A stretch of 64,000 bases of DNA, taken from NCBI GenBank assembly GCA_964247055.1, contig OZ176052.1:12028001-12092000 (forward strand), written 5' to 3'. Made by a program: the position numbers and the translations under genes. The stretch is from Paragordius varius (lineage: Eukaryota; Animalia; Nematomorpha). Under the pieces are notes generated by a model, which saw nothing but the letters and a program-made list of their open reading frames with translations, had not been told where the DNA came from and did no database searches. Positions 2,611 to 62,196 of the stretch are shown here, in pieces; position 1 is the first letter of the stretch; the number at the start of each line of letters is the position of its first letter.

Positions 2611-2949
2611 GTGTAATATAAATGGTGTATAAACAGGCAAAGTATGTTTTAATTTTGTACTGCGTCCAAGTTCAAAATATTTGGTACTAATCGATAACAT
2701 TAAAAAACATAAATACGAGACTTAATCATTTTAGGATTGCGCAAGATTGGAGTTTAAATAAAAAAACTGCAATATAAAATTGTGCTCTCAAAATATAACA
2801 TCCTATTCAGTTTGCTTATAAAAAAGTTATGTTTAACACTTCGATTCAAATTGGGGTATCTAAATACACCAAACTATATTTGAGTTTATATTTTTAGACT
2901 ACAGAAAGAAAAAACGGCACCAATTTAAATTTATGCTTATATCCTAAAC

Positions 2950-7999: not shown

Positions 8000-8034
8000 C
8001 TCTAGATTATTTTCCTTAGCACAAGCGTTGATTA

Positions 8035-8935: not shown

Positions 8936-8973
8936 ACACAGCTCAACTTTAACAAGGATCTAATTGATCAATA

Positions 8974-11823
8974 ATGTTTATAATTTGCAAAACTTGTCAA
9001 AAACCCTATGATCAATGTAGTACATGCTTAGTACCATTTACGTTGAATGAAAAAAATTCAAATCTCCAAACTTTCAATTTATCCCCAGAAAATGTTTCAT
9101 CCCCTTTTCAACAGAATACAATGAGTATATTTCATCCACCCCTCTCCACCGCCACCAATTCATCTCCAACTACCAACTATCAAGATACAAGTAATACAAT
9201 TAACAATGAATCACCTAAAACGTATCCAGACACCAAAGCTCACATGATGAACTATTTAGATTCTAAAACCGGCCTATTTACAAACGTCACTCCGGTATGT
9301 AAATCCTATTCGTTGCAAAAATAATTGGGGACTTATATTTCAAACGAGTAAATAAATAATATGTTGATGGGTAATATAGAAAACGTTTCTCTGTCTTAAA
9401 AATTATCGTCGGTTTTTATGGTAAATTTTTTTTAAAAGCAATTTTGTAGTAGTATTGTTTGTCAATATTTAAGAGACCACACTAAATATTGGCTCACTAA
9501 CCTCAATGATAAATTTTTAATTTATTGATCCATATTTTTAGATTTTAAATAAAATATTGGTGCATTTATTCACATATTTATTGGTAAGCTTAATATTCTC
9601 AGTTGACATTTATAAAAGAGATAATCTACAAACACTGTAAAATAAATGAAAAGATTTTATTTCGGGCTTCAACTCCTTTAAAAATTGCAGTAGTTTCTAT
9701 AAGCATTTATCAAATATTAAAACCGCATCCGGGAGTCGGTGAATCTTACACAGCTTAAATTACAGAATGCAAACCGTCATAAATGTTTTTTTATTCAATA
9801 ATATTTATATAAAAGTTTTGTAGAAACTTGGGCTTATGTTTACATTTACGTAGGAAGTTGATAGCCAAATTATTTCCAAACAGTTGAGATGATATCATAT
9901 CCTTTAAAAAATTAAAATATCCGTAAAACTACCCTAATGCTAATAAGAATAATAATTGTTAGAGAGAATCCATATACTTATAATACCGCTTTAATAAAGG
10001 TAACGAGAAGCAAAAATGATTTGTAAGCCGGAACGATATAATTATCGATTCCGCAACCCTATAAATCATATAATGTATCTGCTAACATAAGCCCAAATTT
10101 TTTGATTTTAACGGTCCACATATTCGCATTACGCTAATCATACTAAAAATATTACTTCCCAGATACAATCGCCAATTACTTCAAATATTGCCTCTAACGA
10201 AAAATGAAAGCAATTTAGAAACAAGGTTATTGTCGAATACTCCGGAAATCAGTAAGTTGCAACAAACATTCCCCTTTCTTTCTATACAGACATTACTCGG
10301 TATGTGGCTTGATAATTATGTGCAAGATGGCAGTAATGAAACAACAAATAATTCACCCAATAAATATCCGTACGAAAACGGAAATGGAGATGAAGAATAC
10401 ATAGAGGGACAAAAGGAGGAGAAACCGCCAATTAAGTATAAACCGAATGACAGTTGGACAATCTACAGACCTAGTCCATTTGAGCCTTAACAACAGACAA
10501 AACCTGGCCCATGTATATTACAAGGAACCGCCATATCTACACAAAATAGAAAAAGTAAATTGACGTCGCTTAATTTTGAGGAGGTTTTACGCCAAGAAGC
10601 CCAAATTTGCCAACAGCTAGCGGAATATTCTCAACAAGTTTCGCAAAACTTGCAATCCATATATGAGACATTTAATTATGAACGGTGTAGAGAACGCAAT
10701 ATTGAAAAACAAATCGCCAAGCGGTTACTGAAAAAACATACCGGACTAAATGTGGATTCCCTCTCTGATCTCACTTCAAAACCCAAAAATAAAAGTTACA
10801 TAATATATACAAATATATTATTTTGTAGAAATCGTTTTCCCTTACAAAACAACTTGATGAATGATAGATAATTAGTGTAACTTAAACTATTTTAGAAATT
10901 AGAAATGATAATTTAATTTTGAAACTTTCTTAAAATTTTTAAGGTGAAATTTATTTCTTTTATTATTTTGAAAAATTATGATATGAATGGATAAAAGTAA
11001 TAATTTTAACTGATGGATTATTATTGATGACCATCGTTTAAAAATAATTTTTGTTTCCTTTAAAGAACGAAGGCCATCTAAGACCGCTGATATCGTTAAA
11101 CCCAAGAATGGAAGTAAAAAGCAAAGGGAGAAAAACATTTTATCAAAAGAAGATAAACCTAAAGTCTTTGCAACTAGTAGTGAATCTTCTTCTACCCCCT
11201 ATCAAAATTGTAAGAAGGGAATGAACAAACTTCTAACGGTTGAAAGTGAGAGTGATTTTACAGATTCATCTACATTAACACATACCCCACCGCCACTACT
11301 TCCCCCTCGTCAAGGTTCATTAATAAGTAAACCGTCTACTTCCACCACACCAATTAATACAACACCGCCTTTCCTTCCACCCCGTCAAGGTTTAATGTTT
11401 AGACCGCCGTTGTCTCAGCCGAGATTTAGAGCTCCCGCTTTTTCCCCATCTACTGGTCTTCAAAATCCGCCACCGCCTCCAAGACCGTTGAAACCACCAA
11501 TGCCGCTACCACCAAATTTTTCACAAGGGCCGTCCGCATACATTAATAACCCATTTGGAGTTCCCGCTTTTACTCCATCTAGTAACTTTCAAAAACCGCC
11601 ACCATCAAGACCCCTGAAACCACCAATGCCGTTACCGCCAAACTTTGCACCACCGCCCTCAAACATCAATAACCCAAGATTTGCTCAAGTACCACGTCAC
11701 CGTCCACCCGCCCCGAATGCAGCAAGTCAAATTAATAACGAGACAAATTGTTGGAATTGTTGCAGTGCAGAACCAACCTCAGTTCCGAAAAATAGAAACA
11801 ATGGCTTTGCCCCTGCCAAATAA
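8974..11823 (+). pseudogene. Disrupted copy A of the 3-exon orphan gene; exons 8974-9294, 10163-~10794, 11066-11823
   Basis: Same splice sites as copies B and C. It has a 5-nt deletion frameshift near 10200 (AACGAAAAATGAAAG vs AACGAAATAATAAATGAAAG in C) and TGG->TAA at 10488-10490. Confidence 0.8.
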
Positions 11824-12350: not shown

Positions 12351-13584
12351 CACTTCGATTTAAATTGGGGTATCTAAATACCCCAGACTAAATTTGAGTT
12401 ATGATTTTAAAATACTAAAGGAAACGGTCCCAATTTATATGCTTCTATTCTAATAAAAATCATATAAATATGCCAACATATCTAAATAAAATTTTGTTTT
12501 GAAAAAAAAAGTTCCATGTCAAACTATTTCGACGCCATTTTTATTTTACAAAAATTTTGCAAAATATCTTTATTTATTTTAAGGGTAAAATTAAAGCTAA
12601 TTTTATATTTAAACTACATTAAACATTGTTAGAAATAGAAGAGCGGTTTATTTTGTATTATTTTTCAATTTTACCATTGCACACATGTCACGTTAACTAA
12701 ATTTTTACCTTTCAGTTTTAGCTTAAAATAAGTAAAGTATTTTTGAACAAATTATTTTATATATACCATCATTTCAAGAGTATCCTTGAACACTTCAAGT
12801 TGGTCCTTGAACAGTTCAAGTTGGTCCTTGAACAATTTAAGTTGGTCCTTGAACAGTTCAAGTTGGTCCTTGAACATTTAAAATTGGTAATGAACACTTC
12901 AAGTCGGTCCTTAAAATTTATAAATTTTGATTTAACCATAATTTTTGCATTGAATTTTTTATTTTATTATATATTAACCTAATTTTCTTTATTTATTATA
13001 TATTTATTCATTTAAAAATTAAATTCTTTATTGAAAAACCACTTTTTTGTTTCAAACTATTTTTTTTCAATTGAATATTGCCTTTTAAATGTTTTTAATG
13101 AAAAATTTTAATTAACACTTGGATACAACGCATCATTTTAGTCCTTCGATTCAAATTGGGATATTTAAATACCCCAGACCTGTTTAAAATTAAATTCTTT
13201 AAAAAATATGGAAGGAATCGAAACCATGGCAGAATTTTGTTTAAAATTTATCTTAAATAATATTAAATAAGTTAAAATCAATAAAATAGATAATTATTTA
13301 CGATTTGATTGGTAAAAGTTAAAAACAAAACAAAGCAGTCAAAGGACCAACTTGAAATGTTCAAAGACCAACTTGAACTGTTCAAGGACCAACTTGAAAT
13401 GTTCAAGGACACTCTTGAAGTGCAAATGGTATATTTCGGTTTATTAATGTGGTATAAGTGCAATATAATGCCATGGCTTTGATTCCTTCCATATTTTTAC
13501 AGAATATAATTTTAAATAGGCCTGGGGTATTTAACTACCCCAATTTGAAAAGAAGGACTAAAATGAATGTTTTGTATCCAAGTG
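12351..13584. mobile_element. piggyBac-like MITE carrying a nested foldback element
   Basis: Left end CACTTCGATTTAAATTGGGGTATC, right end TTGTATCCAAGTG-TTAA. The empty version lacking the foldback is at 26650-27218. Confidence 0.85.
12764..13431. mobile_element. Foldback-type element with inverted 21-bp arrays inserted in a TATA site
   Basis: Termini TACCAT / ATGGTA; arrays at ~12785-12915 (forward) and ~13340-13415 (reverse). The empty host site TTTTTATATATTTC is at ~27060 and ~30385. Confidence 0.85.
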
Positions 13585-15544
13585 TTAAATAGAGTCGATG
13601 TATAAAAAACTTTTACATTATGATAAAATTAAATTAATATATTAAAATAATACAAAGGAATGTTTTCATCCAACACCTTTTATTTCATTTTTTTAATAAA
13701 ATTTTCTTTTAAAAAATCGCATAGTGCCATTTACATTATAGCGCTTTGGGAGATTATAGGTGAACAAAACCCAACTAATTTGAGTTTTATTATTAGGAAA
13801 ATTTTGATTCACACGCATCATACAATCAATAAAAATTTACCATGTATTGAGATTTAATAAAAAATTATCAATCACACTTGCCTAAAAGAAACAGATAAAT
13901 ATTAATTATGCCAAATAATATTAATCAATCTGAGAATTTAGTATCCATCCAAATAATTTTTAGAGTGAATTTCAAAAATTTAAAGGGGAATTTGACATGT
14001 TTAAGATCGAATATGATATGTTTGAGGTTAAATTTGAGGTGTATATGGATTACATTAATGTAACCAAATAGGTTTTTCGCAGTACAGTACTGGGTTTTCA
14101 GAAAAAACTGCGCTAGTAGTGCGCCCACTTTTGTACTGCTTTTAAAATTAAAAAATTTAATTTTTTGTAAGTATATATAAATTTATTTATTAAAAAAATT
14201 ATTTTTAAATTTAATATAGTATAATATTTAATTTTCTGCTTGAATTAAAAATAAAACTTAGGATTGTAGCCTTTCGCGCAGTGGCGAAACTATAATCGAA
14301 CTCCACACCGTAAGATTCAGGCTAATGTCTCTTTCACTTAGGGCTGCCGCAAAAAGAGGTGCCTCAAAATTTAAAATTTACAAAATTAATTTATGATATT
14401 TTAATAAATGTTTGATCAAGTTTAGAAAGTTCATTTTTTGACATAATTATCAAGCGGAAAATTATATATTAAATTGTTATTCCCGTAGCATATTATATAA
14501 AATTTATTATATATGGCATATTTCTAACCTTTTTTCCGCATTAAAATATCAAGAGTTTTTACGTTTTCTCTACTCATTAGGTGAGAGGTATGATATTATT
14601 TAATAATTTTCCTAAACTTTAATTTTTATTAGTTTTTATTTTTTAGCATAAAAAAATTTGAGGTATTTTGATGAAGCGTAATTCTAACGATTTTGAAGCA
14701 TGATGGAAACGGTATAACGCTTTTAGATATAATAAATCCCTTTTTTAATTCGATGATGTTAAACATTACTATAGGTTCAGAATTTTAATTTAAAGGTTTG
14801 TTTGCTTGCAAATTTTGGTGAAGTTTTGTGAAAAAACATATATTAACATAAATTTTAAAACGAACGATTATTTAATCAAAAATATAATTGAGAATTAGCT
14901 TTATCGAATTATATATATAAAAATTACAACATTTCAACCGTTTATATAGTTTCCATCATGCTCAAAATAATATGAAGTACGCTTCAACAAAATTTTGCAA
15001 AAAATTTCGGAATTTTTGCGTTTATTTTAACAGTCCATTTTATAAGAGCCAAAAAATTTGGGACTTTCAGAGCCAATATCTAAGAATTTAAAAATTTTAA
15101 AATATTTTTTGCTTTTTATATGTAGTTTATGTTATATTTTAGTGATATTTTTTGAAACAAAGCATTTTGTTCACCAAAAAATATATTTGAAAAAATTGCG
15201 CACCTTTGGCAATTTTATACGGAGCACTTGCCACAAAAGTGTTATTAACTTTCTTTAATAAATCGTAAAGGTCAAAACTAAAAGCACCATGATTAATCCT
15301 GATTATTTTGTGGAAGCTGTGTAAGATAACATAGGATGGTGTAAAAACAGCCAAAGTATGTTTTAATTTTGTACTGCGTCGTAGTTCAAAATATTTGGTA
15401 CCATTAGATAACATTAAAAAAATATAAATCATTTTAGGATTGCGCAAGATTGGAGTTTAAATAAAAAAACTGCAATAAAAAATTGTGCTCTCAAAATATA
15501 ATATCCTATTCAGTTTGCTTATAAAGATTAAAAGTTATGTTTAA

Positions 15545-16060
15545 CACTTCGATTCAAATTGAGGTATCTAAATACTCCAAACTATATTTGAGTTGATATT
15601 TTTAGACTGCAGAAATAAAAAACGGCACCAATTTAAATTTATGCTTATATCCTAAACAAATTATATTAAATGGAACAATGTAAAACTTTAGTTTCAAAAA
15701 GGCCCATATCAAACTACTTCGACGCCATTTTTATTTTATAACATTTTGGCAAAATATCGTGTTTATTTAATTTTAAATTTATCACTTATAATATTGATAG
15801 AGGCAGAAAAAGTGGTTTATCTTCTATTATTTTTAAATTTGGCTAAACAGTCATGTTGACTAAATATTTACTTTTGGGTTTTATTCTAAAATGTGTGATA
15901 AATATTAAATCATTTTTTTTATATTTCGGTTCATTAATGTTACATAAGGGCAACTTTTTGCCATAGTTTCAATTCCTTCCATAGTTTTTGAAATATTTTA
16001 AACAAGCCTGCAACTACCACGATTTGAATCTAAGGACAGATATTGTGTTCTATCCAAATG
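15545..16060. mobile_element. piggyBac-like MITE, uninterrupted
   Basis: TTAA on both sides (15541-15544 and 16061-16064); contains the empty hAT target site. Confidence 0.88.
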
Positions 16061-16556
16061 TTAAAACTTGTTTTAATTATTATGAAAACCAAACCATTTT
16101 TATGATTGCAAAAATGTTTTTAGTAAATGGTAAAATGTTTTGATAGACTAAATAATCGTATAAATTGACTGGGGATATGTTTCGATTAGGAAAACATTTT
16201 CATTTATTAAAAATGTTTTTTGGACTGGGCTGTGGTATATTTTTTAAATTTTTTATTGTTATATTTTGCAATTATGTATTTTTAAATAGAATACATTAAA
16301 TGTTATAATTGTGTGGAATTTTCGTTAAACCCGTTTTTAAAAATGTATAGGTCTTAGAGTTCTCTCTGACATCCTTAATAAGGTTGGTAAAGGGCTTCTT
16401 ATTTGTAGTTCCCCACCCCATTTATGATTGCGAGTTTCTCAACGACCCCAACAAATATAAAAGAAATTTCAATTTTGAGAGATTGACAAAAATAAATCTA
16501 CATTTTTCATAAATTCCTATAATATTTTCCGATTGATAGTAAATTTAAACAAGATA

Positions 16557-17803
16557 CTAGCTGGCCCTGTCACGTGTGGCATAGTCTCACCGATAATTAT
16601 TCTAAATAATTTGCAATAAATAGGGTTAATCGAGATAAATAATAATAAACATATTTAATAAAAAGAATGTCTTTAATTATTCTTTTACGGGTTTTGCATA
16701 GGCTGAAATATTGGGTACCCAAAATTGACCATAGTTAATCCGTCCCTTATTAAAGTTAATATTCAACTATCATCGGATTTATTTTAAGATTTTCGTTTAA
16801 CGAAATCATGGTTAAAAGAATTTGAAATTGTGTTCATACATCTGGGATCAAGGGATATAATAAATCATTTGTGGTCCCTTTTTAAAGGAAAGAATATTAT
16901 ACAAATTCCCCAGAAATGTGTTTAACTAAACTCGTAGGGCTTCTTAAGTTTTGTAAAAATTTGCTCCAAAACTACCCCTATTTTGTATGGCGGCCAGTTT
17001 TAAACCGATAGACCCTTACCCATTAACCTATATGGAAAAAGTTCAGTTAATTCTTTGCCTTTATAGAGGAAATATTTGGAATCATATTTGATGCCATCGT
17101 CTCATGGGTTATTCGAAAAAATACCTCAACACTAAATAATCGTTATATGATGGCGTTTTAGGGCATCAAGGCACCAAATTAACGGTAATAAAAAAACTCG
17201 ACCTTAATTTTTACCTAGTTCAGGGTAATATTTCAAGCTTTCAATGAGCTCATATGGCTTCATGAACTTTCTGTAAATTAGCTCCAAAAAAACGTAAATT
17301 CTATATAGTGGCGCAGTTTTAGCGGCTATCCCTTTACCCAGCAGCCAATATTAAAACGCAAGACTATAATTTTTGCTTTTAACAGAGAATAACTCGAATC
17401 CTCAGTAAATTTTAACGGTCTCATATCCTGGGAAAAAAATTTAGTTTTTTTAAAAAAATGGCATCTTACGGGGGGAACGGGTAAAAAGAGAGCCTAAATT
17501 AAAAAAGTAATCCGACTAGGTTCGGCGCAATCGAAAAAAAGTAATAATAATCATATTTGAAATCGAATGGTACAACACGTTTTCCGTATATATGCCTCAA
17601 AGAGACGATTGTTCTGTTTTCAAAAAAACCCGTTTTTCACACGGTGTGGGCCCGAACTCGGAGCCTAAATCAAAAAAAGGGAAAGCTATTGTCTGAGCAT
17701 TCATTAGGGATTATATTTTTTTGGCATTTGGATTTGAATGGGTATACCGGTTTCCGGAAGCAGATCACAAAGCCATTATTTTCCATTTTTATACATATAT
17801 AGA
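16557..17803 (-). mobile_element. Non-autonomous Helitron, subfamily A (second copy)
   Basis: Colinear with 6570-7814, with the same TC 5' end and CTAG 3' end and A|T flanks. Confidence 0.85.
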
Positions 17804-17868
17804 TTATAATGATTGGAATAGAAATGCTGGTATAACAGTCTTTTAGAACCAGAAAATTTTATGATATA

Positions 17869-20575
17869 CTAGCGTGAATCTCGTGCTGCTACGCAGCCCG
17901 AAGAAGTCCTTCGGACTTCTGGGGGGAGGGGGGGGTTCGAAGTTTGGATTTGAATGGGTCTACCGGTTTTCCTGTAGATCACAAAGCCAGCATTTTCCAT
18001 TTTTATAAATATATAGATTACCATAAATAATGTTTTAATATCCATTTATCTTTTAACATGCTATACATATGATAGATACTCCTTACTCAGCAGCTATCAT
18101 CAAAGAAACGCCTGACTAAAATTTTTGCCTTTTAACAGGCATTACGAAAAATCCTTCTCGAATTTTTACAGTCTCATACCTTGGGCAATAAAATACAATC
18201 AAAAAAATATTTTTGTGGACTTTGTTTTTTTTTGAAAAAAATGGCATTTTACGGGGGGAGCGGATAAAAAGAGGGCCTAAATCAAAAAAGTGACTCGACT
18301 ATGTTCGGTGCAATCGAAAATAAGTAAACAAAAATCATATTTGAAATTTAATGGTCCAACACGTTCTCCAAAAAATTGACTTAACCCATTTTTCACACGA
18401 GGTGGGCCCAAACTGGGGACCTAATTCCAAAAAAGGGCGAAGCTATTGTCGGGGCATTCATTAATGATTAAATTTTTTCGATGTTTGGATTTGAATGGGT
18501 TCACCGGTTTTCCGGAAACAGATCACAAAGTTATATGAAAAATCAGTTTTTAGCGGGTAGCTCATTACCCAGCAGCTATCATCAAATAAACGGTGGACTA
18601 AAATTTTTGCCTTTTAACAGGGAATACGTGGAATCTTTATTGAATTTTTACGGTCTCTTACCTAGGGCGAAAAATCGATTTAAAAAATTATTTTTGTGGA
18701 CTTTGTTTTTTGAAAAAGGTGGCATTTCACGGGCGGAGCGGGTAAAAAGAGGGCCTAAATCAAAAAAAAGGCTCGACTATGTTCGGTGCAATCGAAAATA
18801 AGTAAACAAAAATCATATTTGAAATTTAATGGTCCAACACGTTCTCCAAAAAATTGACTTAACCCATTTTCACACGGGGTGGGCCCAAACTGGGGACCTA
18901 TAATTCCAAAAAAGGGCGAAGCTATTGTCGGAGATTCATTAATGATTAATTTTTTCGATGTTTGGATTTGAATGGGTTCACCGGTTTTCCGGAAACAGAT
19001 CACAAAGTTATATGAAAAATCAGTTTTTAGCGGGTAGCTCCTTACCCAGCAGCTATCATCAAATAAACGGTGGACTAAAATTTTTGCCTTTTAACAGGGA
19101 ATACGTGGAATCTTTATTGAATTTTTACGGTCTCTTACCTAGGGCGAAAAATCGATTTAAAAAATTATTTTTGTGGACTTTGTTTTTTGAAAAAGGTGGC
19201 ATTTCACGGGGGGAGCGGGTAAAAAGAGGGCCTAAATCAAAAAGGTGGCTCGACTATGTTCGGTGCAATCGAAAATAAGTAAACAAAAATCATATTTGAA
19301 ATTTAATGGTCCAACACGTTCTCCAAAAAATTGACTTAACCCGTTTTTCATACATGGTGGGCCCGAACTGGGGGCCTATTTCAAAAAAAAGGCGAAGCTA
19401 TTGTCGGGACATTTATTAATGATTATATTTTTTTGATATTTGGATTTGATTGGGTCTACCGGTTTTCCTGTACCAGATCACAAAGCCAGCATTTTCCATT
19501 TTTATAAATATATAGATTACCATAAATAATGTATTAATATCCATATATCTTTTAACATGCTATACATATGATAGATACTCCTTACTCAGCATCTATCATC
19601 AAAGAAACGCATGACTAAAATTTTTGCCTTTTAACAGGCAATACGAAAAATCTTTCTCGAATTTTTACAGTCTCATACCGTGGGCAAAAAAATACAATTA
19701 AAAAATTATTTTTGTGGACTTTGTTTTTTTTTGAAAAAAATGGCATTTTACGGGGGGAGCGGGTAAAAAGAGGGCCTAAATCAAAAAAGTGACTCGACTA
19801 TGTTCGGTGCAATCGAAAATAAGTAAACAAAAATCATATTTGAAATTTAATGGTCCAACACGTTCTCCAAAAAATTGACTTAACCCATTTTCACACGGGG
19901 TGGGCCCAAACTGGGGACCTATAATTCCAAAAAAGGGCGAAGCTATTGTCGGGGCATTCATTAATGATTAAATTTTTTCGATGTTTGGATTTGAATGGGT
20001 TCACCGGTTTTCCGGAAACAGATCACAAAGTTATATGAAAAATCGGTTTTTAGCGGGTAGCTCCTTACCCAGCAGCTATCATCAAATAAACGGTGGACTA
20101 AAATTTTTGCCTTTTAACAGGGAATACCTGGAATCTTTATTGAATTTTTACGGTCTCTTACCTAGGGCGAAAAATCGATTTAAAAAATTATTTTTGTGGA
20201 CTTTGTTTTTTGAAAAAGGTGGCATTTCACGGGGGGAGCGGGTAAAAAGAGGGCCTAAATCAAAAAAGTGGCTTGATTATGTTCGGCGCAATCAAAAATA
20301 AGTAAACAAAAATCATATTTGAAATTGAATGGTCCAACACGTTCTCCGGAAAATTGTCTCAAAAACACGATTTTGTGGACTTCTGTTTTTAAAAAAAAAC
20401 CGTTTTTCATACGGGGTGGGCCCGAACTGGGGGCCTATTTCAAAAAAAGGGCGAAGCTATTGTCGGGACATTTATTAATGATTATATTTTTTTGATATTT
20501 GGATTTGATTGGGTCTACCGGTTTTCCTGTACCAGATCACAAAGCCAGCATTTTCCATTTTTATAAATATATAGA
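17869..20575 (-). mobile_element. Non-autonomous Helitron, subfamily B, with internal ~480-bp tandem array
   Basis: 3' hairpin CGGGCTGC-GTA-GCAGCACG, then AGATTCACG-CTAG|T; 5' A|TCTATATATTTATAAAA. Empty site GATATA|TTTATCTACG at 7879/7880 shows A|T insertion with no TSD. Confidence 0.92.
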
Positions 20576-20732
20576 TTTATCTACGATGATTGTTATTTTT
20601 CTTTATAAAAATTTTACAAGTTAAAAACATTTTTTGTTAAACTCTATTCTTATCACTCGGGACTCCAAATGGGGTGTCCATAGTTTAAGAAGCCCTGCTC
20701 TAGATTATTTTCCTTACCACAAGCGTTGATTA

Positions 20733-21625
20733 CCAGGTGTAGTCTAAGGTAATAACGGCTTTTTGCTAAAAAACTTAATTGAGGAAATCAATTATTTATT
20801 TTATTGGAGATATTGTCCATCTAGAAAAATTTCTCCAACTCTTAAGTTATGAATGCCATGATTGGAAACTAAATGTTTTTTGGTAAAGCATCTGTCAAGC
20901 CATTTTTAAACGTTTTACAAATTATTAAGCTGCTCTCTGCAAGCATATACTATGATGCGATGAGGGAATAGTGATCGTCAGGTCAGGAGAGTCCCGAAGC
21001 GATTATAAGGTGTCTTTTATTGGTTTTGCCGTGTGGGACGCATTGTTATGTGGAAAATTTTATCGTACTGTCTTCGGGGCTATTTTGGTCGTTTTCCTTA
21101 ATGCATTAATTTAATTAATCATTTTCTGCAGATAGAGTTTTGTATTAACGGTTTCGGGGCTCATGCACAACAGCGCTTTGGTCCACCAGACACATTCATG
21201 GTTTTAATGAAGTGATTAACTTTGATGTTGATTGACCGGTTGGCAACTTAGCATTTCTCTCTGTCAATTTACAAAAACCATTTCTCACCATCCTCCGGAA
21301 GCAGGATATCTCAAGTCCATTGGTGATTTTATAATTGCCATGCGAATTGTCTGGGCAGTATTTACTGAGTTTATTGATCCTTCTCATTTTGTATACATTG
21401 AATGGTTGTGATACACGTATGAAATGAGTTTGAGTTAAGTCATCATCCAATTAGCCTCGGATTTTGTCTTCGCAGCTGTGTCTGCCATGCCCACTCTCTT
21501 TCATATTAAAATCATTTAAATATATAAACTATGTTACACAATTTAATCTGGAACAATGACTTTCAACATCCTTTTTCTTCTGATGTATAAAAGCAATGCA
21601 TCCCGTAATCGTTTTTAGGGACACA
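20733..21625 (-). mobile_element. Degenerate mariner (duplicate of 8035-8935)
   Basis: TA-CCAGGTGTAGTC end. The ORF-track entry 21196-21450 is a fragment of its transposase. Confidence 0.85.
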
Positions 21626-22179
21626 GTTCGACTTTACTGAAAAATAAACATGAGAGCCCGCTTTTGACAGGTATAATTTCTTTGTCTGTGTCGTCTGATG
21701 GGCCAAATGGCGTCTGGGTCAAATTAATCGGTTGCTTACTTTTTTGACTTCTTATATTAGTTAAACTGGTATTATATACATCTGGTGCAGTGGTTAAAAA
21801 TAAAGATATTGCACGAAATGTCTATATTTCTTTATAAAAAACCTAATATTTTTTAAACCCCTATTTTTCATTATATCGTCTCGGGTTAATTGGGTTTTCT
21901 AGGGATATAATGATAGGTTAAAAATATAAGGTATGTATAAATATTGCAATTTTGTGGTAAAGAGTAAATTATTGGATTACATTTAGATAGATACTCGTGG
22001 TATAGGAGCTGACCTGATTCCTGCCTAGCCCGCCTTCTTCTGGTCTAGCGTCCTTTCGTGTCCTGTCTTTATATATTTTGAAATCCTTTTCAACAAGTAG
22101 ATTCTTGATTTTACCGCTCAGTCATTTCCAGTATCCACCGAATGAGTTTACTGTCATTGCTCATCCGCACGCGCTACAT

Positions 22180-22760
22180 AATCAATACAATTCTCCCACA
22201 TCGTAACCGTTTTTTTTTCGAGTGCATGACCCAGCTTTTATTTTAATCCTTACGCAGGAAGCTCCTAGAAATAGGCCGATATGGTGTGCCATTTCTTTAG
22301 GCCAGCTAGAAGAATGGCTAGTCTTATGCAAAAAATTAAAATTTTTTGTATGAGGGAGGTAAGCAGTTGTGAGCTCCTCAAAGGTATGTGTATATAGCAA
22401 GTGATGCGTCGTAGCCACCTTTTTATGAAAACTTGTATGTTTCTGGCATGTATGTGCGTACGCAACGAGCATCAGTATCCCAAGGATAATCATACATTTC
22501 AAGATTTTTAATTTCAGTTTAAGCCCAACTTTATTGGATAGCCATAGGCCTCTGACCCCACCGACCAATTGTTAGCAAGTTCCTTTTTCATAATGGTAAT
22601 CACATTGGTATTATAGATGATGATGGACATCCCTTAGTTTGATTACACTGGGGCAGGTGAGAGAGCCTAGACCATACCGACCAAGCTCTGCAAGTTGATG
22701 GTTCGAATGTGCGTTATTTGATCTTATCTAAATATCGCAATTTAGGCATTCCATGTTTTA
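22180..22760 (-). pseudogene. Decayed RTE-clade LINE, 3' part of ORF
   Basis: Fragments LWLSNKVGLKLKLKILKCMII, IQVFIKRWLRRI and F*ELPA*G.K.K.G...TMWENCI resemble the RTE post-RT region. Heavily frameshifted; boundaries approximate. Confidence 0.6.
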
Positions 22761-23255
22761 TATACAAACATTTGATCCATATTTAATCACACTTATAACC
22801 TTAAAATAAAATAAAAAACTGTTTTTATGGCATATAACTTAAAGAGGTATTATTATGATTCCCACAACTTTTATGGGAATACCGGAATCAATATACATTC
22901 CTGGTAATAATTATATCTAAATCCTCAATGTATTATATTTATTAATATTTTATAATATTTTATATTTCCAGACGAAAAACGCGACAATTTTGAATGTTTG
23001 GGAAATGGATGGCTAAGTAGAGCAAACTATCTCATCATATTTTACCAGAATATTATGTACCATAAAAAATGCTTTACACATAGATAATTATAATTAATTC
23101 TATTATCCAATTGAAATTTAATTGATATGCCAATTACATCATGTCTACGTTTGGTATTAACAATCAATGACATATTAATAATTATTCAGTAATGTGTATT
23201 TTTGAAAAATATTTTTAAATTACGTTAAATAGTACAAGGATCTAATTGATCAATA

Positions 23256-26105
23256 ATGTTTATAATTTGCAAAACTTGTCAAAAACCCTATGATCAATGT
23301 AGTACTTGCTTAGTGCCATTTATGAATGAAGAAAATTCAAATTTCCAAACTTTCAATTTATCCCCAGAAAATGTTTCATCCCCTTCTCAACAGAACACAA
23401 TGAGTACATTTCATCCACCTTTCACAACCACCACCAATTCATCTCCAACTACCAATTATCAAGATGTTATTAATACAATTAACAATGAATCACCTAAAAC
23501 GATTCCAGACACCAAAGCTCACATGTTGAATTATTTAGATTCTAAAACCGGTCTATTTACAAACGTCACTCCGGTATGTAAATCCTTTTCGTTGCAAAAA
23601 TAATTGGGGATTTTATTTCAAACGAGTAATTAAATAATATGTTGATGGGTAATATAGAAAACGATTTTCTATGTCTTAAATATTATCGTCGGCTTTTTAT
23701 GGTAAAGCTTTATTAAAAGCAATTTTGTAGTAGTATTGTTTGTCAATATTAAACAGACCACAATAAAAAATATTGGCTCACTAACTTCAATGATAAATTT
23801 TAAAATTAATCCATAATTTTTTACATTAAATAAAATATTGGTGCATTTATTCACATATTTATTGGTAAGCTTAATATTCTCAGTTGACATTTATAAAAGA
23901 GATAATCTACAAACACTGTAAAATAAATGAAAAGATTTTATTTCGGGCTTCAACTCCTTTAAAAATTGCAGTAGTTTCTATAAGAATTTATAAAATATTA
24001 AAACCGCATCCGGGAGTCGGTGAATCTTACACAGTTTAAATTACAGAATGCAAACCGTCATAAATGTTTTTTATTCAATAATATTTATATAAAAGTTTTG
24101 TAGAAACTTGGGCTTATGTTTACATTTACGTATGAGTCATGGAAGTTGATAGCCAAATTATTTCCACACAGTTGAGGTGATATCATATCCTTTAAAAAAC
24201 AAAATTAAAATATCCGTAAAACTACCCTAATGCTAAGAAGAATAATAATTGTTAGAGAGAATCCATATACTTATAATACCGCTTTAATAAAGGTAACGAG
24301 AAGCAAAAATGATTTGTAAGCCGGAACGATTTAGTTATCGATTCCGCAACCCTATAAATCATATAATGTATCTGCTAACATAAGCCCAAATTTTTTAATT
24401 TTAACGATCCACATATTCGCATTACGCTAATCATACTAAAAATATTACTTCCCAGATACAATCGCCAATTACTTCAAATACTGACTTTAACGAAGTAGGA
24501 AATGAAAGCAATTCAGAAACAAGGTTATTGTCGAATACTCCGGAAATCAGTAAGTTGCAACAAGCATTTCCCTTTCTTTCTATACAGACATTACTCGGTA
24601 TGTGGCTTGATAATTATGTACAAGGTGGTAGTAATGAATCAACAAATAATTTAGCCAATAAATATCCGTACGAAAACGGAAATGGAGATAAAGAATACAT
24701 AGAGGGACAAAAGGAGCAGAAACCGCCAATTAAGTATAAACCGAATGACAGTTGGACAATCTACAGACCTAGTCCATTTGAGCCTTGGCAACAGACAAAA
24801 CCTGGCCCATGTATATTACAAGGAACCGCTATATCCACACAAAATAGAAAAAGTAAATTGACGTCGCTTAATTTTGAGGAGGTTTTACGCCAAGAAGCCC
24901 AGATTTGCCAACAGCTAGCGGAATATTCTCAACAAGTTTCACAAAACTTGCAATCCATATATGAGACATTTAATTATGAACGGTGTAGAGAACGCAATAT
25001 TGAAAAACAAATCGCCAAGCGGTTACTGAAAAAATATACCGGACTAAATGCGGATTCCCTCTCTGATCTCACTTCAAAACCCAAAAATAAAAGTTACAAA
25101 ATATTAGAAATCGTTTTCCCTTAGAAAACAACTTGATGAATGATAGATAATTAGTGTAACTTAAACTATTTTAGAAATTAGAAATGATAATTTAATTTTG
25201 AAACTTTCTTAAAATTTTTAAGGTGAAATTTATTTCTTTTATTATTTTGAAAAATTATGATATGAATGGATAAAAGTAATAATTTTAACTGATGGATTAT
25301 TATTGATGACCATCGTTTAAAAATAATTTTTGTTTCCTTTAAAGAACGAAGGCCATCTAAGACCGCTGATATCGTTAAACCCAAGAATGGAAGTAAAAAG
25401 CAAAGGGAGAAAAACATTTTATCAAAAGAAGATAAACCTAAAGTCTTTGCAACTAGTAGTGAATCTTCTTCTACCCCCTATCAAAATTGTAAGAAGGGAA
25501 TGAACAAACTTCTAACGGTTGAAAGTGAGAGTGATTTTACAGATTCATCTACATTAACACATACCCCACCGCCACTACTTCCCCCTCGTCAAGGTTCATT
25601 AATGAGTAAACCGTCTACTTCCACCACACCAATTAATACAAAACCGCCTTTCCTTCCACCCCGTCAAGGTTTAATGTTTAGACCGCCGTTGTCTCAGCCG
25701 AGATTTAGAGCTCCCGCTTTTTCCCCATCTACTGGTCTTCAAAATCCGACACCGCCTCCAAGATCGTTGAAACCACCAATGCCTCTACCGCCAAACTTTG
25801 CACAAGGACCGTCCGCATACATTAATAACCTATTTGGGGTTCCCGCTTTTTCTCCATCTAGTAATTTTCAAAAACCACCACCGCCCCCAAGACCTTTGAA
25901 ACCGCCTATGCCGCTACCGCCAAACTTTGCACCACCGCCCTCAAACATCAATAACCCAAGATTTGCTCAAGTACCACGTCACCGTCCACCCGCCCCGAAT
26001 GCAGAAACTCAAATAAATAACGAGACAAATTGTTGGAATTGTTGCAGTGCAGAGCTAATCTCAGTACCGAAAAATAGAAATAATGGCTTTGCCCCTGCCA
26101 AATGA
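23256..26105 (+). CDS. Orphan 571-aa protein, intact copy B: N-terminal CxxC-x7-CxxC, helical middle, basic patch, Pro-rich tail; exons 23256-23573, 24456-25092, 25345-26105
   Basis: Donor CCG|GTATGT to acceptor CCCAG|ATA (phase 0), then donor A|GTTAC to acceptor TTTAAAG|AA (phase 1). Exons total 318+637+761 = 1716 nt, an open frame with no internal stop. The same structure is present in copy C. Confidence 0.8.
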
Positions 26106-26649
26106 ACAGGCATGGGCATGGGAAATATTAAAAAAATTATTATCGTAAAACCCAATACCTATTAAATATTAAAAATATATAAAAACTAATATAATGTTTA
26201 TATGCTATGCGCAAATTAATAAATGCAAAATAAAAATAACGAAATAATTATTAATATGAATGAGTGTATAAAATATATTGACCAAATTAATTATATTACA
26301 ACACAATTTTAACTTTGAAGATGTGTTAAGCTATTGAATTGCGCTATATGGCAAATAAATTTGACTTAATATTAGTTTTAATTTCCTTAAACGACAAATA
26401 GTATTATTTCAGATTAAAAATCAAATTTCACCCAGAGAGAGTTCTAAACATTACTTGGTATTGTTTTAAACTTGATGGAAATAATTGCCTGATATAAAGT
26501 TGAGATGTATAAATATTAAATACCAGATGATATTGTAATGGTAAATGACGGATTGATTATGTTTTGTAATAACAGTTGTCAAACTTTCAATCAATTTTCT
26601 ATTTAAATTCCGATTATCATTATATTACGGATTTTACAACTGTTATTAA

Positions 26650-27218
26650 CACTTCGATTTAAATTAGGGTATCTAAATACCCCAGACTATTGAGTTATGA
26701 TTTTTAAACTACTAAAGGAAACGGTTCCAATTTAAATTTATGCTTCTATTCTAATAAAAATCATATAAATATGCCAACATATCTAAATAAAATTTTGTTT
26801 TAAAAAAAAGTTCCATGTCAAACTTTTTCGACGCCATTTTTATTTTACAAAAATTTTGCAAAATATCGTCTTCATTTATTTTAAGGGTAAAATTAAAGCT
26901 AATTTTATATTTAAACTACATTCAACATTGTTAGAAATAGAAAGAGCGGTTTACTTTGTATTATTTTTCAATTTTACCATTGCGCACATATCCGTTAACT
27001 AAATTTTTACCTTTCATTTTTAGCTTAAAATATGAAATATCAAGTATTTTTGAATAAAATTTTTTATATATTTCTGTTTATTAATGTGATATAAGTGCAA
27101 AATTTTGCACTGGCTTTGATTCCTTCCATATTTTTAAAGAATATTATTTTAAACAGGCCTGGGGTATTTAACTACCCCAATTCGCGCGGGACTAAAATGA
27201 ATGTGTTGTATCCAAGTG
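26650..27218. mobile_element. piggyBac-like MITE (empty of foldback)
   Basis: TTAA-CACTTCGATTTAAATTAGGGTATC ... TTGTATCCAAGTG-TTAG. Confidence 0.85.
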
Positions 27219-28140: not shown

Positions 28141-28984
28141 GACTTTATCTTATATGACCGCGAATTCGAATCAAACTTTTTATGGAAATTTGTCATGTTT
28201 TAGTTTGAAACATCAGTGGTCAAATTGATAATTTAAGCATATTTAAAATATTAAATAGCTCATAATGTGTAAATCAGTACACTCATTTATTTTTTGGAAA
28301 ATTCTGGCAAGATATTTTTAAAATCATTCAAATAAGTCATTATTAATACAATAAAGATGATATCATCATATTTTAGGGAAATGATGTCGAAGACTTTATT
28401 TCATAGAAATAACTAACCATCGATCAAAAAATATTATGCAAAGTTTGATTTCATTTAAAAACCACAAAAACTACCATTTATTGCATAACAAACATAGATC
28501 ATAGAGTCTGATACAATATATATATATAAACATAGTATATATTTTCTTTTTCTTCGTGCTTTCGGAGATTTCGCAGGCTGGCTTTGAAAGGCATGAAATT
28601 GAATTGTCTCAATTTGTGCTGATATCAGTGCTACCGTTGATCCATCGGAGAATAAACCTTGTTTTACAAATATGATATAACAATAGCAATTACTCTTTAT
28701 GTGTTGCATGATTTAACAAGAAGGAAGTCGTTTATAAGCACAATTTACTGTTACCATCTTCTGCACATTGGTCATGAAATTCTAAATATATATAGAAAAG
28801 CACATAGGATTTAACGCACTTCTTTACTTGTTTTATTTTTGACCTCCCAATACTTTCCACCAATTTGTATGACACTTTATCGCAATAACAGCATTTCATT
28901 AATAATTAATAATCTTTTCCTTGTTAATTTAAAGGTGGTGTTAAATAATTTTCTAACGGAATCATTCTTTTCAGAAAGGGAGTT

Positions 28985-29640
28985 TATAAAAAAAGTAAAA
29001 CTTCATGATAATCGTTCATGTCCACGTTTTCTAGCCCCTTCTAATAGGCCTAATATGGTTCCTTTTGTATGTTATCGGCTCTCATCACTTGTTCGAAAAT
29101 CTTAGTTGCAAGGTATGATTTTTTAAATAGGGTCTCTTTTGTATATGTGCTAGTATTTTAACATTTGTTATCTTATGTTCCAATTGTATTCTGAGCATAT
29201 ATCTATGGATTCATAAATCTAATGCTTTTATTTTGCTTCAATCGGTTGAGGCTCCACGACTCACATAGTGCAATACTGGAAAAATTGTTTCTATCACACA
29301 GTGGAATTGTGAAATTTTTTGTTTTTAAGAATGGATCGAGTTTGATTGCATTTTTTGCCATTGCAACTCTCCTGATAATGTCCGTTGTAGAGGTGCCATT
29401 TATGTAAACATTTTGCTCTAAGCTAAGTTATGTTGGTTCTGAGCAAATATTTTCTCCCTATAATTGGCTTTATTTGTCATGTATGGCGTTTTCTTGGGGA
29501 TAATTTTAAGCCCTTTAAAAATCGCAGTGAGTCACTTTTGTTTTGGTAAGATTTGTTATGCCGTCAGCGAAACGCAAATTATTGGTATCGCCTACTATTT
29601 GATGCCCGCTGGTTATTCCATGATTATGATAATGTTTTCA
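28985..29640 (-). pseudogene. RTE-clade non-LTR retrotransposon remnant (RT core to C-terminus)
   Basis: TNNLRFADGI (~29560-29586), GLKIIPKKTPYM, DIIRRVAMAK, ESWSLN, MLRIQLEHKITNVKIL and LGLLEGARKRGHER across shifted frames. Confidence 0.85.
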
Positions 29641-33904: not shown

Positions 33905-35147
33905 TTATAGTTTTTCTGGCATCAAGTCAAGGTCGACATACTCCGGTTTCTTGGATTTTTTAGACTCCTTATTTTTGCGGATTAATTTATAATTATATTC
34001 TTCTCCGTGGTGATTTTTCTCATTATTCGATCTTTTCCAATATTTGATTTTGGAATTCCAATCTCTCCATTTAGAAGTAGGAGTGGGGGTCAATTCAATC
34101 CATTTTCCTGTACTTTGAGAAATTTTAATGTCATCTTTACCACCAGATGATTGGATGTAAAATTTAGAGAGCTGAATTATTTGTGGCCAAACGGGTTGAG
34201 GTTGAGGAGTAGGTACAAATGTTTGGGCGGATGATGGCGCTACCCAAGATTTTTCTTTGGGTGTCGGTGAAACCCATGACTTAGCATAAAGAATCTTTTG
34301 CGACGGCAAAGGTGGGGGTGTTGTGCTAGGTTGCCAACCCCAACTTTTTACAGAACTGGGAGGTGCTTCACTTGAAGCAACATGCCAAGATTTAATAATT
34401 TTCGTGATTGGTATGTTTGTGGAAGGTGGTAGGCCACTAGATTGGGGACAAACTAATTTATTATATATGAGTACGGGAGGACATGGGCTTGGAGCGACCG
34501 TGGTGGAAACCGGTGTAGGAGGCGGAAATGTAGAAACTGTGGTCGACTGAGTTGTTGAAACGGTACTACTTACCCAGGATTTGACCCATTTCCCCGAAGC
34601 AGTTGACGAAGGCCATCCACCCTTATTCCAAGAAAGGGGAGCCGCAGTAACTGGGGATGCCCATCCCCAAGGCTGCTGATTCTTTATCCAAACATTGTTC
34701 CAAGGATTAACAGGTGCAGGGGTTTGAGGTGGAATAGTTACACTCCATGTGTCAATCTTTTTAATCCAATTGTTCCAGTCAGAATAGGGCCCTAAAATTA
34801 TTATTAATCTATACCACTTGGGTTGCTGTACCACCCTGGAATTCTTTTATTGCGTGATTCCCCTAAAATTAATTTAGAAATTACTTTTTTCAATTTTCGA
34901 TCCAGAAATAATTGCCGGTAAATACGCAATAAATTGCCCAAGCTTTTTGAAATCAGATTCATCTCGAATTATAATATTATATACCTTGTACCAAAGTTAA
35001 TAGAAGCTCATCGGGTATGTTATCAATTATCTGATCCAAAGATTCAAAATTTGTAAAATTTATTGGTGCCGCATCCAGCAAACGCAGCTTTGGATTAAAA
35101 TCCAAAATTTCCCAAAAACAGATTATTATAATAAATTTTATATACAT
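33905..35147 (-). CDS. Secreted Trp/Pro/Ser/Thr-rich preproprotein, ~391 aa, unknown family; introns 34963-34984, 34863-34884, 34792-34814
   Basis: Three GT-AG introns of 22, 22 and 23 nt join MYIKFIIIICFWEIL... to the 309-aa ORF in frame (1176 nt total). Hydrophobic N-terminus, RNKR site and repeated KSW motifs. Confidence 0.75.
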
Positions 35148-35869: not shown

Positions 35870-36740
35870 TTATATTAATTTATATGCAAATAATAAATAA
35901 CCACTATGTAAAACATATTTCATTGGTTTGCTTAAAATGTAATATTTTTTGTTGTCCCCATTTAAGGATACGAGATCATGTTCGCGGAAATTATAGGGTA
36001 TTTTTGTACATTGAATGGTTTCTACTTGAGAATATTTGAGAGAGTTAAGTCGACTTACTGTTTTTTGGCATTGTTCAATACAGGGACAGAATATGCAAAT
36101 CTGAGAACCTAAAAAATTAATCGTCTGCTTTATTAATACCTTTAGCTAAACGTTTAGTAACATTTCCCAAAGCTTTCCAGGGAGTTGGAATATCAAGAAT
36201 AACTTTGTTAACGTAGTCTCCAAAATTTTGATCAAACGAAATTTCATCACAAATATCAAAAGATAAAACTGTAACATTTTTGTCTTCATAACCGTGATTC
36301 CTCAATTCCTCTTGGGCAATTTTATATCTATCATCCCTATCAATTGTGTATAAATGTCCGTCAGGGAGAATGGCATTGAGAATAAAGTGGGATAAAGCAG
36401 CACTCCCGGTCCCACATTCTAAAACTTTATCATCAGATTTCAAATTAAGTTTAAATATAATAATGGATATGTCTGTAGTATACAATATTTGAGTCCTATG
36501 AGGCAACAAATCTATCCAAACATCTAACGTTGGATGCATTAAATAAACCCATTTGTTTGAATTGCAATAATATTTGGATCCATAAATCCGCCCAATTATA
36601 TGGTTATGTCGAATCGAACCAAATTTTGTTTGATGAATTTTATCTGCCTCAATTTTTATTAAAAATTGTGAATTTCTTCCTTGCCAAATTACAACTTCAT
36701 CGTTTATATCAATAATATCTTTATATCTGATTAAGCTCAT
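35870..36740 (-). CDS. TRMT61A: tRNA (adenine58-N1)-methyltransferase catalytic subunit; intron 36109-36139
   Basis: LPHRTQILY, VLECGTGSAALSH, ILDIPTPW; after a 31-nt intron FCPCIEQ and HSGYLLFA. Start taken at MSLIRYKDII. Confidence 0.93.
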
Positions 36741-59308: not shown

Positions 59309-62196
59309 TCATTTGGCAGGGGCAAAGCCATTATTTCTATTTTTCGGTACTGAGGTTGGTTCTGCACTGCAACAATTCCAACAATTTGTCTCGTTATTTA
59401 TTTGAGTTTCTGCATTCGGGGAGGGTGAACGGTGACGTGGTACTTGAGCAAATCTTGGGTTATTGATGTTTGAGGGCGGCGGAGCAAAGTTTGGCGGTAA
59501 CGGCATTGGCGGTTTAGGGGGTCTTGGCGGTGGTGGCTTTTGAAAATTACTAGATGGAGAAAAAGCGGGAAGCCCAAATGGGTTATTATTGTGTGCGGAC
59601 GGTCCTTGTGCAAAATTTGACGGTAGCGGCATTGGTGGTTTCAACGGTCTTGAAGGCGGTGGCGGATTTTGAAGACTAGTAGATGGGGAAAAAGCGGGAG
59701 CTCTAAATCTCGGCTGAGACAACGGCGGTCTAAACATCATTAAACCTTGACGAGGTGGAAGGAAAGGCGGTAGTGTATTAATTGGGGTGGCGGAAGTGGG
59801 TGGTTTACTCATTAATGAACCTTGACGAGGGGGAAGTGGTGGCGGTGGGGTATGTGTTAATGTAGATGAATCTGTAAAATCACTCTCACTTTCAACCGTT
59901 AGAAGCTTGTTCATTTCCTTCTTACAATTTTGATAGGGGGTGGAAGAAGATTCACTACTAGTTGCAAAGAATTTAGTTTTATCTTCTTTTGAGGAAATGT
60001 TTTTCTCCCTTTGCTTATTACTTCCATTCTTGGGTTTAACGGCATCAGCGGTCTTAGATGGCCTTCGTTCTTTAAAGGAAACAAAAATTATTTTTAAACG
60101 ATTATCATCAATAATAATCCATCATTATAAATTATTAATTTTATCCATTCATATCATAATTTTTCAAAATACTAAGAATAAATTTCACCTTAACCACATA
60201 TAACAACTACCTTAAACTAAGGAAGTTTCAAAAATAAATTATCATCTCCAATTTCTCAAATAGTTTAAGTAACACTAAGAATTATATATCATTCATTAAG
60301 TTGTTTCCTAAAGTGAACAATTTCTAAAAAATGATATATTTGTATATATTATGTAACTTTTATTTTTGGGTTTTGAAGTGAGATCAGAGAGAGAATCCAC
60401 ATTTAGTCCTGTATGTTTTTTCAACAATCTCTTGGCGATTTGTGTTTCAATATTGCGCTCTCTACACCGTTCATAATTAAATGTCTCATATATGGATTGC
60501 AAATTTTGCGAAACTTGTTGAGAATACTCCGCTAGCTGTTGGCAAATTTGGGCTTCTTGGCGTAAAACCTCCTCAAAATTAAGCGAAGTCAATTTATTTT
60601 TTCTATTTTGTGTGGATATGGCGGTTCCTTGTAATATACATGGGCCAGGTTTTGTCTGTTGCCAAGGCTCAAATGGACTGGGTCTGTAGATTGTCCAACT
60701 GTCATTCGGTTTATACTTAATTGGCGGTTTCTCCTCCTTTTGTCCCTCAATGTATTCTTCATCTTCATTTCTGCATTCGTACGGATCTTTATTGAATGAA
60801 TCAATTGTTGATTCATTACTGCGTTGCACATAATTATCAAGCCACATACCGAGTAATGTCTGTATAGAAAGAAAGGGGAATGTTTGTTGCAACTTACTGA
60901 TTTCCGGAGTATTCGACAATAACCTTGTTTCTAAATTGCTTTCATTTATTATTTCGTTAGACGCAATATTTGAAGTAATTGGCGATTGTATCTGGGTAGT
61001 AATATTTTTAGTATGATTAGCGTACGAATATGTGGATCGTTAAAATTAAAAAATTTGGGCTTATGTTAGCAGATACATTATATGATTTATAGGGTTGCGG
61101 AATCGATAACTAAATCGTTCCGGCTTACAAATCATTTTTGCTTTTTGTTTCCTTTATTAAAGCGGTATTATAAGTATATTGGTTCTCTCTACCAATTATT
61201 TTTCTTATTAGCATTAGGGTAGTTTACGGATATATTAATTTTGTTTTTTAAAGGATATGATATCACCCCAACTGTGTGGAAATTATTTGGCTATCAACCC
61301 TAACCCTATAAATTATACGTAAATGTAAACATAAGCCCAAGTTTCTACAAAACTTTTATATAAATATGATTGATTATAAAAACATTTATGACGGTTTACA
61401 TCCTGTAATTTCAGCTCTGTAAGTTTCAACGACTCCTTGATGCGGTTTTAATATTTGATAATGCTCATAGAAACTACTGCAATTAAAGGATTTTTTTTGA
61501 AGTAAGAAATAAAATCTGTTCATTTTTTACAGCTGTTTTTAGAGTGTCTTTATTATAAATGTCAACTGAAACTATCGAGCTTACCAATAAATATGCAAAA
61601 AATGCACCAATATTTTATTTAAAATCTAAAATTATGGTGCAATAAATTAAAAATTATCATTGAAGTTAGTGAGCCATTATTGTTAGTGTGGTCTCTTTAA
61701 ATCGACAAACAATACTACTACAAAATTGCTTTTAATAAAACCTTACAATCAAAAACCGACGATAATTTTTAAGACAGATAAAATCGTTTTCTATATTACC
61801 CATCAATATATTATTCAATTACTCGTTTGAAATATAAGTCCTTAATTATTTTTGCAACGAAAAGGATTTACATACCGGAGTGACGTGTGAAAATAGGCCA
61901 GTCTTAGAATCTAAATAGTTCATCATGTGAGCTTTGGTGTCTGGAATCGTTTTAGGTGATTCATTGTTAATTGTATTAATAACATCTTGATAATTGGTAG
62001 TTGGAGATGAATTGGTGGCGGTTATGTAAGGTGGATGAAATGTACTCATTGTGTTCTGTTGAAAAGGGGATGAAACATTTTCTGGGGATAAATTGAAAGT
62101 TTGGAAATTTGAATTTTCATCTAACTTAAATGGTACTAAGCAAGTACTGCATTGATCATAGGGTTTTTGGCAAGTTTTGCAAATTATGAAACTCAT
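59309..62196 (-). CDS. Orphan 571-aa protein, intact copy C; exons 61876-62196, 60358-60991, 59309-60069
   Basis: Same splice sites and phases as copy B; 321+634+761 = 1716 nt open frame. Confidence 0.8.

Follow-up and report, generated by a model that had tools for sequence, protein, structure and literature searches.

Three neighbouring open reading frames (ORFs) of 115, 198 and 201 aa lie between 23256 and 26105 on the plus strand of a 64,000-nt window (G000:C3:12028001-12092000) of the Paragordius varius genome, and raise the question of whether they are separate frames or the exons of one gene and, if the latter, where this gene came from and what its product does. The original prediction, made from the letters of the window, joined the three by splicing into one protein and assigned it to an orphan family with three copies, A, B and C, all of which lie inside the window; B is the copy at 23256-26105. 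Coordinates below are those of the window unless another locus is named. The genome is that of an animal, 110.6 Mb in size and very AT-rich (GC 0.25-0.36). We conclude that the three ORFs are very probably exons of one real protein-coding gene that is maintained by selection, and hold the existence of the family with the same confidence; the sequence points to a real, undescribed gene family restricted to hairworms. The complete explanation developed here, which comprises the gene, the family, the loss of an ancestral BACK domain and a role as a docking scaffold, we put at a probability of roughly one half. To our knowledge, few animal phyla have received as little study as Nematomorpha, and the lineage-specific genes of this phylum are almost entirely uncharacterised.

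The three-exon gene model

In copy B the three ORFs join at GT..AG sites into a single frame of 318 + 637 + 761 = 1716 nt, equal to 571 codons followed by TGA, in agreement with the arrangement first proposed. Exon 1 (23256..23573, plus strand, 318 nt, 106 codons, phase 0) runs from the ATG through a cysteine knuckle, CKTC-x6-CSTC, into a Ser/Thr-rich linker and ends at the donor GTATGT. All motifs named in the original prediction are present in copy B, with the correction that the two halves of the knuckle are separated by six residues and not by seven. Intron 1 (23574..24455, plus strand, 882 nt, GTATGT..CCCAG) is followed by exon 2 (24456..25092, plus strand, 637 nt, 212 codons plus one base), which begins directly after CCCAG, ends at the donor A/GTTACA, and encodes in order a linker, short helices (FPFLSIQTLLGMWLDN), a PNDSW..PGPCILQGTAI block and a predicted 59-residue amphipathic helix. 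Intron 2 (25093..25344, plus strand, 252 nt, GTTACA..AAAG) is a phase 1 intron. Exon 3 (25345..26105, plus strand, 761 nt, acceptor AAAG) continues with a basic patch, TPYQN, an acidic Ser-rich stretch, two LPPRQG motifs, two Pro-rich repeats of 42-43 aa, CWNCC and the TGA; a tandem duplication with a unit of 126-129 nt (about 43 aa) occupies 25701..25965 of the plus strand. About 115 nt past the stop, an AATAAA (26219..26224, plus strand), identical in A, B and C, could serve as a polyadenylation signal. We infer the splicing of copy B from these features and from the comparisons that follow. The joined frame was used only for its length, its stop codons and the ratio of nonsynonymous to synonymous divergence (dN/dS); all searches and structure predictions were made with single exons, or with the naturally uninterrupted exon 1+2 ORFs found in some paralogs.

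Comparison between copies argues strongly for a single coding unit. The types of splice site, GTATGT..(C/A)CCAG and GTTACA..TTAAAG, are identical in 9/9 three-exon copies of the chromosome, and exon lengths in intact copies differ by multiples of 3 only (318/321/324, 631/634/637 and 638/761/764/770 nt for exons 1 to 3). Copy C, on the minus strand, consists of exon 1 at 61876..62196 (321 nt), exon 2 at 60358..60991 (634 nt) and exon 3 at 59309..60069 (761 nt); it too is open throughout and sums to 1716 nt, as had been claimed. Between B and C there are six exonic indels, two of them in exon 3 and all of 3 nt, while the intronic indels range from 1 to 19 nt; divergence is 5.4-6.9% in exons and 9.1-10.5% in introns. 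The dN/dS of this pair, a check proposed together with the prediction, is 0.38 (bootstrap 95% interval 0.24-0.57) and thus lies away from 1. Across the 28 pairs formed by eight copies the median is 0.36 (range 0.27-0.55) in frame, and the two alternative frames give 0.87 and 1.02.

Older paralogs provide a further line of evidence. Exons 1 and 2 run together without interruption as a single ORF, 314-318 residues long when counted from the Met, in the paralog L018 and in four copies on C1 (fused ORFs at L018:3423-4367 and L013:3424-4482, both on the minus strand), so that intron 1 is absent from these two older classes. Intron 2, on the other hand, is found in phase 1 and in the same codon in every paralog class. 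The residues that immediately follow it (K-R-R/K-P/Q-SKTAD) are conserved and precede the first ATG in exon 3; SKTAD is kept in L018, and the C1 copies have SKTAD or SKTSD. Because coding conservation extends upstream of its first ATG, exon 3 cannot be a separate gene. In addition, a protein of the horsehair worm Gordionus carries the exon 1 motif, the exon 2 core and a basic, then Pro-rich continuation all in one chain.

Origin, size and exchange of the family

Pfam scans of every exon, of sub-segments and of paralogs gave nothing at cut-off, in line with the statement that no family could be recognised; nor did a clear match to a known host or transposon family emerge from these scans. Transposase, reverse transcriptase, integrase, capsid or viral domains were looked for in the exons and paralogs and none was detected. 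Weak Pfam matches to SSFA2_C, YjcZ and zf-met2 were discarded as below cut-off, as was the lone row of a sequence profile search of the PDB (septin-3, E 0.92). Matches in the ESM Atlas to giant-virus clusters of C2H2 type had a recognition score of 1676, below the 2300 benchmark; they are probably driven by composition and were considered uninformative. Foldseek against the PDB, likewise proposed as a check, gave no match at E 0.001.

A search of 1.84 billion representative proteins with an exon 2 profile (hmmsearch) identified a single true relative, an unnamed protein of 667 aa from Gordionus sp. m RMFG-2023 (CAK9297721.1, hereafter P0001), at E 7.7e-28 over profile positions 20-206. The second row of this search was rejected as a repeat artefact, and a word-index search with an alignment that included P0001 found nothing besides P0001 itself. 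The relationship is also seen in the reverse direction, with tblastn of P0001 matching window positions 24420-25070 at E 1.3e-31; in the knuckle region (23265-23330), 15/22 residues are identical. The designation as an orphan is therefore refuted, whereas that of a lineage-specific family holds, the sole relative in protein searches being a horsehair worm: with one hairworm relative only, the family is taxonomically restricted and not a strict orphan.

P0001 and the Paragordius proteins share the same order of motifs, with 35-40% identity in the core: an N-terminal C[KR]TCQKP[YF]xQCxTCLVP motif; an FP[YF]LS.QTLL..WLDN helix, then an LQG.AI block; and a long helix ending in ..LL[KR]KYTG..VDSLS, followed by a basic stretch and a Pro-rich tail. 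They differ in three respects. Between knuckle and core, P0001 alone contains a Pfam BACK domain (residues 96-167, E 5.8e-15) and a follow-on segment of roughly 65 residues; the CWNCC and the 43-aa Pro-rich repeats of the Paragordius copies are absent from it; and its 90% cluster has no other member, compared with at least 27 exon 2 matches in the Paragordius genome. The Pfam model for BACK (PF07707) detected nothing in any exon of copy B, in L018 or in L013. A stretch with 37% identity to P0001 residues 148-231, which include the P0001-specific part after BACK, occurs at one place in the genome, beside the dead family copy L019. It forms a palindromic pair (L019:5382-5805, equal to G000:C3:12336381-12336804) in which a decayed copy on the gene's strand stands next to an inverted duplicate. 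L019 itself has about 850 extra nt relative to B, between B positions 23523 and 23569, and this extra stretch falls within a few residues of the alignment gap for the BACK-bearing segment of P0001. These observations suggest an ancestor of the form knuckle-BACK-core-tail, from which the amplified copies would have lost BACK.

How large is the amplified family? The count of three copies is correct for the window but not beyond it: the same chromosome, C3, carries 12 family loci, and a tally of exon 2 matches across the genome returns at least 27, so that the family comprises more than 20 loci. Those on C3 span 11.59-12.34 Mb in both orientations, and seven of them (B, C, L021, L006, L007, L009 and L010) have three exons and are intact; L018 (C3:11.589 Mb) is intact without intron 1, and the tail of L002 is cut short by a stop codon in its last repeat. 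Three are dead, namely A, L019 with a degenerate exon 1, and L020 with a 2.5-kb insertion in exon 2. Copy A (8974..11823, plus strand; exons 8974-9294, 10163-10794 and 11066-11823) is a pseudogene and, as predicted, broken: it has lost 5 nt at the beginning of exon 2, and at about 10488 TGG has become TAA. It alone lacks a 300-nt upstream region common to all other copies, and its similarity to B begins 22 nt before the ATG. On C1 a subfamily of about 55% identity has four copies with an intact exon 1+2 ORF (2.04-2.30 Mb) and six broken ones; broken copies in an array at G000:C1:2600109-2628002 include four spaced about 5.6 kb apart with identical stop patterns and two more nearby. C4 holds one family relic.

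The proposal that the family was amplified by segmental duplication is supported by units that exceed 14 kb and by introns that are 90-96% identical between copies. Positions 1-12764 of the window parallel 12782-27071, and an inverted copy extends from about 57320 to 64000; on this sequence evidence, amplification is both tandem and inverted. A tandem array of about 477-bp units (92% matches), each with a 106-aa ORF, is part of the duplicated unit; it is found at 18079-20577 and also at 7327-7816, 17317-17805 and 58591-59149, on the 5' side of B and immediately past the 3' end of C. Tail-to-tail with copy B lie the remains of a USP-type deubiquitinase gene, from its 3' part (28198..29020, minus strand); this is the decayed partner gene of the duplicated unit. 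USP relics adjoin several family loci, and fuller copies are found at C3:12329952-12330808 and C1:2092494-2093350.

The copies resemble one another in a mosaic fashion: B differs in intron 2 from A by 0.8% and from C by 10.5%, and in the 3' flank from C by 2.0% and from A by 9.8%. The nearest copy thus switches along the gene, which indicates exchange between copies. Such changes of nearest copy were seen at 8952-12116, 23234-26400 and 59147-62447, and in several pairs dS exceeds intron divergence; taken together, the two observations indicate gene conversion between copies. The number of 43-aa Pro-rich units also varies by paralog, with one in L021, two in B, C and others, and four in L018.

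Protein anatomy and candidate functions

AlphaFold2 was applied to exon 2 of copy B, with P0001 in the alignment, and to the exon 1+2 ORF of L018. In the former, the 59-residue helix (exon 2 residues 137-195) was predicted with a block-mean predicted local distance difference test score (pLDDT) of 80-94, accompanied by three short helices at about 50-64 and disorder elsewhere. The L018 model has a mean pLDDT of 39, with one helix above 60. Over these predictions, about half of the residues score under 50. We infer that the family protein is mostly disordered. The predicted long helix is amphipathic, its hydrophobic power peaking at 3.5-3.6 residues, and so has the length and heptad-like period expected of a coiled coil.

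Constraint along the protein was estimated as the ratio of nonsynonymous to synonymous differences per site (pN/pS), pooled over eight copies. The long helix is the most constrained segment (0.07), followed by the C-terminal CWNCC segment (0.13), the Cys knuckle (0.18), the FPFL..WLDN helices (0.24), the PNDSW..LQGTAI block (0.27) and the Pro-rich repeats (0.38). Higher values were found for the Ser/Thr-rich linker at residues 26-106 (0.58), the basic patch (0.63) and residues 166-199 (1.08). Residues 107-133, the linker that opens exon 2 (24456-24536), gave about 3 from few sites and non-independent pairs, and this signal could reflect either diversifying selection or small-sample noise; the frameshift of copy A falls in the same linker. 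The knuckle, CxxC-x6-CxxC followed by LVP, is present in all eight intact or near-intact three-exon copies on C3 and in the C1 copies. It begins directly at the N-terminus, where no signal-peptide-like hydrophobic stretch was apparent by eye. Exon 3 of copy B contains four PxxPxR, one RxxPxxP and two YxN motifs; these Pro-rich motifs, several in a region predicted to be disordered, have the make-up expected of SH3 ligands. In the C1 paralogs, the tail consists of repeated [EV]PIY[MI]NQ interleaved with PxxPxR.

We tentatively propose that the protein acts as a dimerising, largely disordered, multivalent docking scaffold, because the helix is conserved, the Cys clusters at both ends are conserved, and the repeat array between them is variable and carries SH3-type motifs. 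The amphipathic helix would pair two molecules as a coiled coil, while the tail would offer a variable number of short docking motifs, in copy B the four PxxPxR and two YxN, to proteins with SH3 and possibly SH2 domains. The knuckle and the C-terminal CWNCC could provide a contact with metal or lipid, and the valency of the scaffold may be tuned by gain and loss of repeats.

Several points weigh against this proposal and against the wider explanation of which it is part. PxxPxR and YxN are short, and Pro-rich sequence readily generates them. The heptad pattern of the long helix is moderate, with 10/17 a/d positions hydrophobic, and the third Cys of the knuckle is replaced by Gly in L018, which is otherwise intact. 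Partner binding, zinc binding and oligomeric state are all putative properties of the family protein. At the level of the gene, the transcription and junctions of the model are derived from sequence, and P0001 might conceivably owe its BACK domain to an erroneous fusion in its gene model.

Among the alternatives, the one that survives best, and which we regard as unlikely, is a regulator associated with the nucleus or nucleic acid. Here the basic patch where exons 2 and 3 join would be a bipartite nuclear localisation signal, its two clusters, KPKNKKRRPSK and KPKNGSKKQREK, lying about 8 residues apart; the knuckle would bind zinc and contact nucleic acid or chromatin proteins, and the Pro-rich tail would serve as an activation or condensate region. 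The constraint on the knuckle, its presence in Gordionus and the predicted disorder of the chain agree with such a role, and the best Pfam matches of the knuckle, though weak, are to zinc-finger models (among zf-met2, zf-met and zinc ribbons, zf-met2 at E 0.014). However, zf-met2 scored 15.9 bits against a cut-off of 27, and no zinc-finger model reached cut-off; the basic segment is under weaker constraint than most of the protein, and one knuckle Cys is lost in L018.

An adaptor of the ubiquitin pathway appears more doubtful. Binding to ubiquitin or a cullin complex is conceivable because the family probably descends from a BACK protein, has a USP gene as its companion in the duplicated unit and contains a CUE-like 'L..FP.L' helix. 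The BACK domain of P0001 and the relic beside L019 are in keeping with this descent, as are the USP relics beside several family loci and at 28198-29020 with the companionship. With respect to the helix, two CUE and one UBA domain were among the weak Foldseek rows, and hhalign against CUE models placed the alignment exactly on the FP helix. The Foldseek rows, however, have E above 5, and the hhalign probability is 0.4% (E 0.13). The Pfam CUE model (PF02845) gave no match on the isolated segment even at E up to 10, and in a scan of the whole genome it matched three other loci, none of the family; these three tests (Pfam, genome-wide scan and hhalign) lend a CUE identity no support. Furthermore, the FP pair is replaced by IP or IA in L018 and C1, BACK has been lost from the amplified copies, in which Pfam is blank, and at most loci the USP partner has decayed.

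It is very improbable that the family has no organismal function and is carried along as a passenger, either of segmental duplication or of some mobile element, its frames open through youth or gene conversion. Introns nearly as similar as exons, the signs of sequence exchange, the dead copies A, L020 and L019 and the premature tail stop in L002 would fit a passenger. This is contradicted by a dN/dS of 0.27-0.55 in 28/28 pairs with values near 1 in the control frames, by indels that keep the frame, by conservation of the same motif order at 55% identity on C1 and 35-40% in another genus, and by the lack of any transposon or viral domain in the Pfam scans.

We likewise give little credence to a parasite effector that would be exported into the insect host and there, like bacterial effectors of the EPIYA type, imitate the docking sites of host tyrosine kinases. 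The C1 tails with their repeated [EV]PIY[MI]NQ between PxxPxR motifs, the restriction of the family to a phylum of behaviour-manipulating parasitoids, and a lineage-specific amplification with one fast-changing linker (residues 107-133, small counts) would fit it; the N-terminus nevertheless starts with the Cys knuckle and, by eye, without a signal-peptide-like stretch, and purifying selection dominates. Its fullest version, in which a hairworm invention from a BACK-domain protein lost BACK and was amplified into exported host-mimicking docking proteins, with SH3-ligand and EPIY/YxN arrays that rewire insect host signalling and one linker diversifying between copies, is the least probable reading of all.

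Neighbouring features and comparison with known systems

Elsewhere in the window, a 309-aa ORF on the minus strand (33905-34834) is rich in Pro, Ser, Thr and Trp, has repeated KSWV-type motifs and belongs to no Pfam family. Between B and C lie single-copy housekeeping exons at 36117-36827 and 43946-44362, both on the minus strand; one corresponds to the tRNA m1A58 methyltransferase TRM61/GCD14 (E 3e-41) and the other to a DnaJ C-terminal domain (E 7e-9). The best matches of the TRM61 exon are animal proteins at 40-46% identity, which bears out an animal genome without pointing to a phylum.

For annotators, the locus yields a supported gene model in an unannotated genome. The anatomy of the family can be read despite the lack of a known domain, as a knuckle, a putative dimerising helix and a variable array of docking motifs, and its path is traceable from a probable loss of BACK, through amplification with a deubiquitinase passenger, to birth and death of copies. 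The family is a candidate for the study of amplified disordered proteins in a parasitoid that alters host behaviour.

Three known systems invite comparison. The 'L..FP.L' helix-turn-helix resembles the Met-Phe-Pro region of CUE domains, which like UBA domains are three-helix ubiquitin-binding domains; in the family, however, the FP pair is not conserved, and the third helix and the di-leucine of these domains are lacking. As to BTB-BACK(-Kelch) proteins, the BACK domain closest in the genome to that of P0001 (38% identity) belongs to a gene with BTB and BACK exons on C4 (L028, G000:C4:2739000-2748999, at 3090-6913 on the minus strand), whereas the window proteins have neither BACK nor BTB. A 442-aa ORF downstream on the same strand (CKVC..CKTC, with a Lys-rich end) may belong to this gene; kinship of the C-terminal part of the gene with the family was rejected, the parts being unrelated. 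Finally, adaptors of the Gab/Dos/IRS type are multivalent SH3/SH2 docking scaffolds, with long disordered chains and arrays of PxxPxR and YxN. Neither a PH nor a PTB domain is present in the family, and its sequence is unrelated to that of these adaptors; what it shares with them is a predicted disordered array of PxxPxR and YxN motifs, a functional analogy only.

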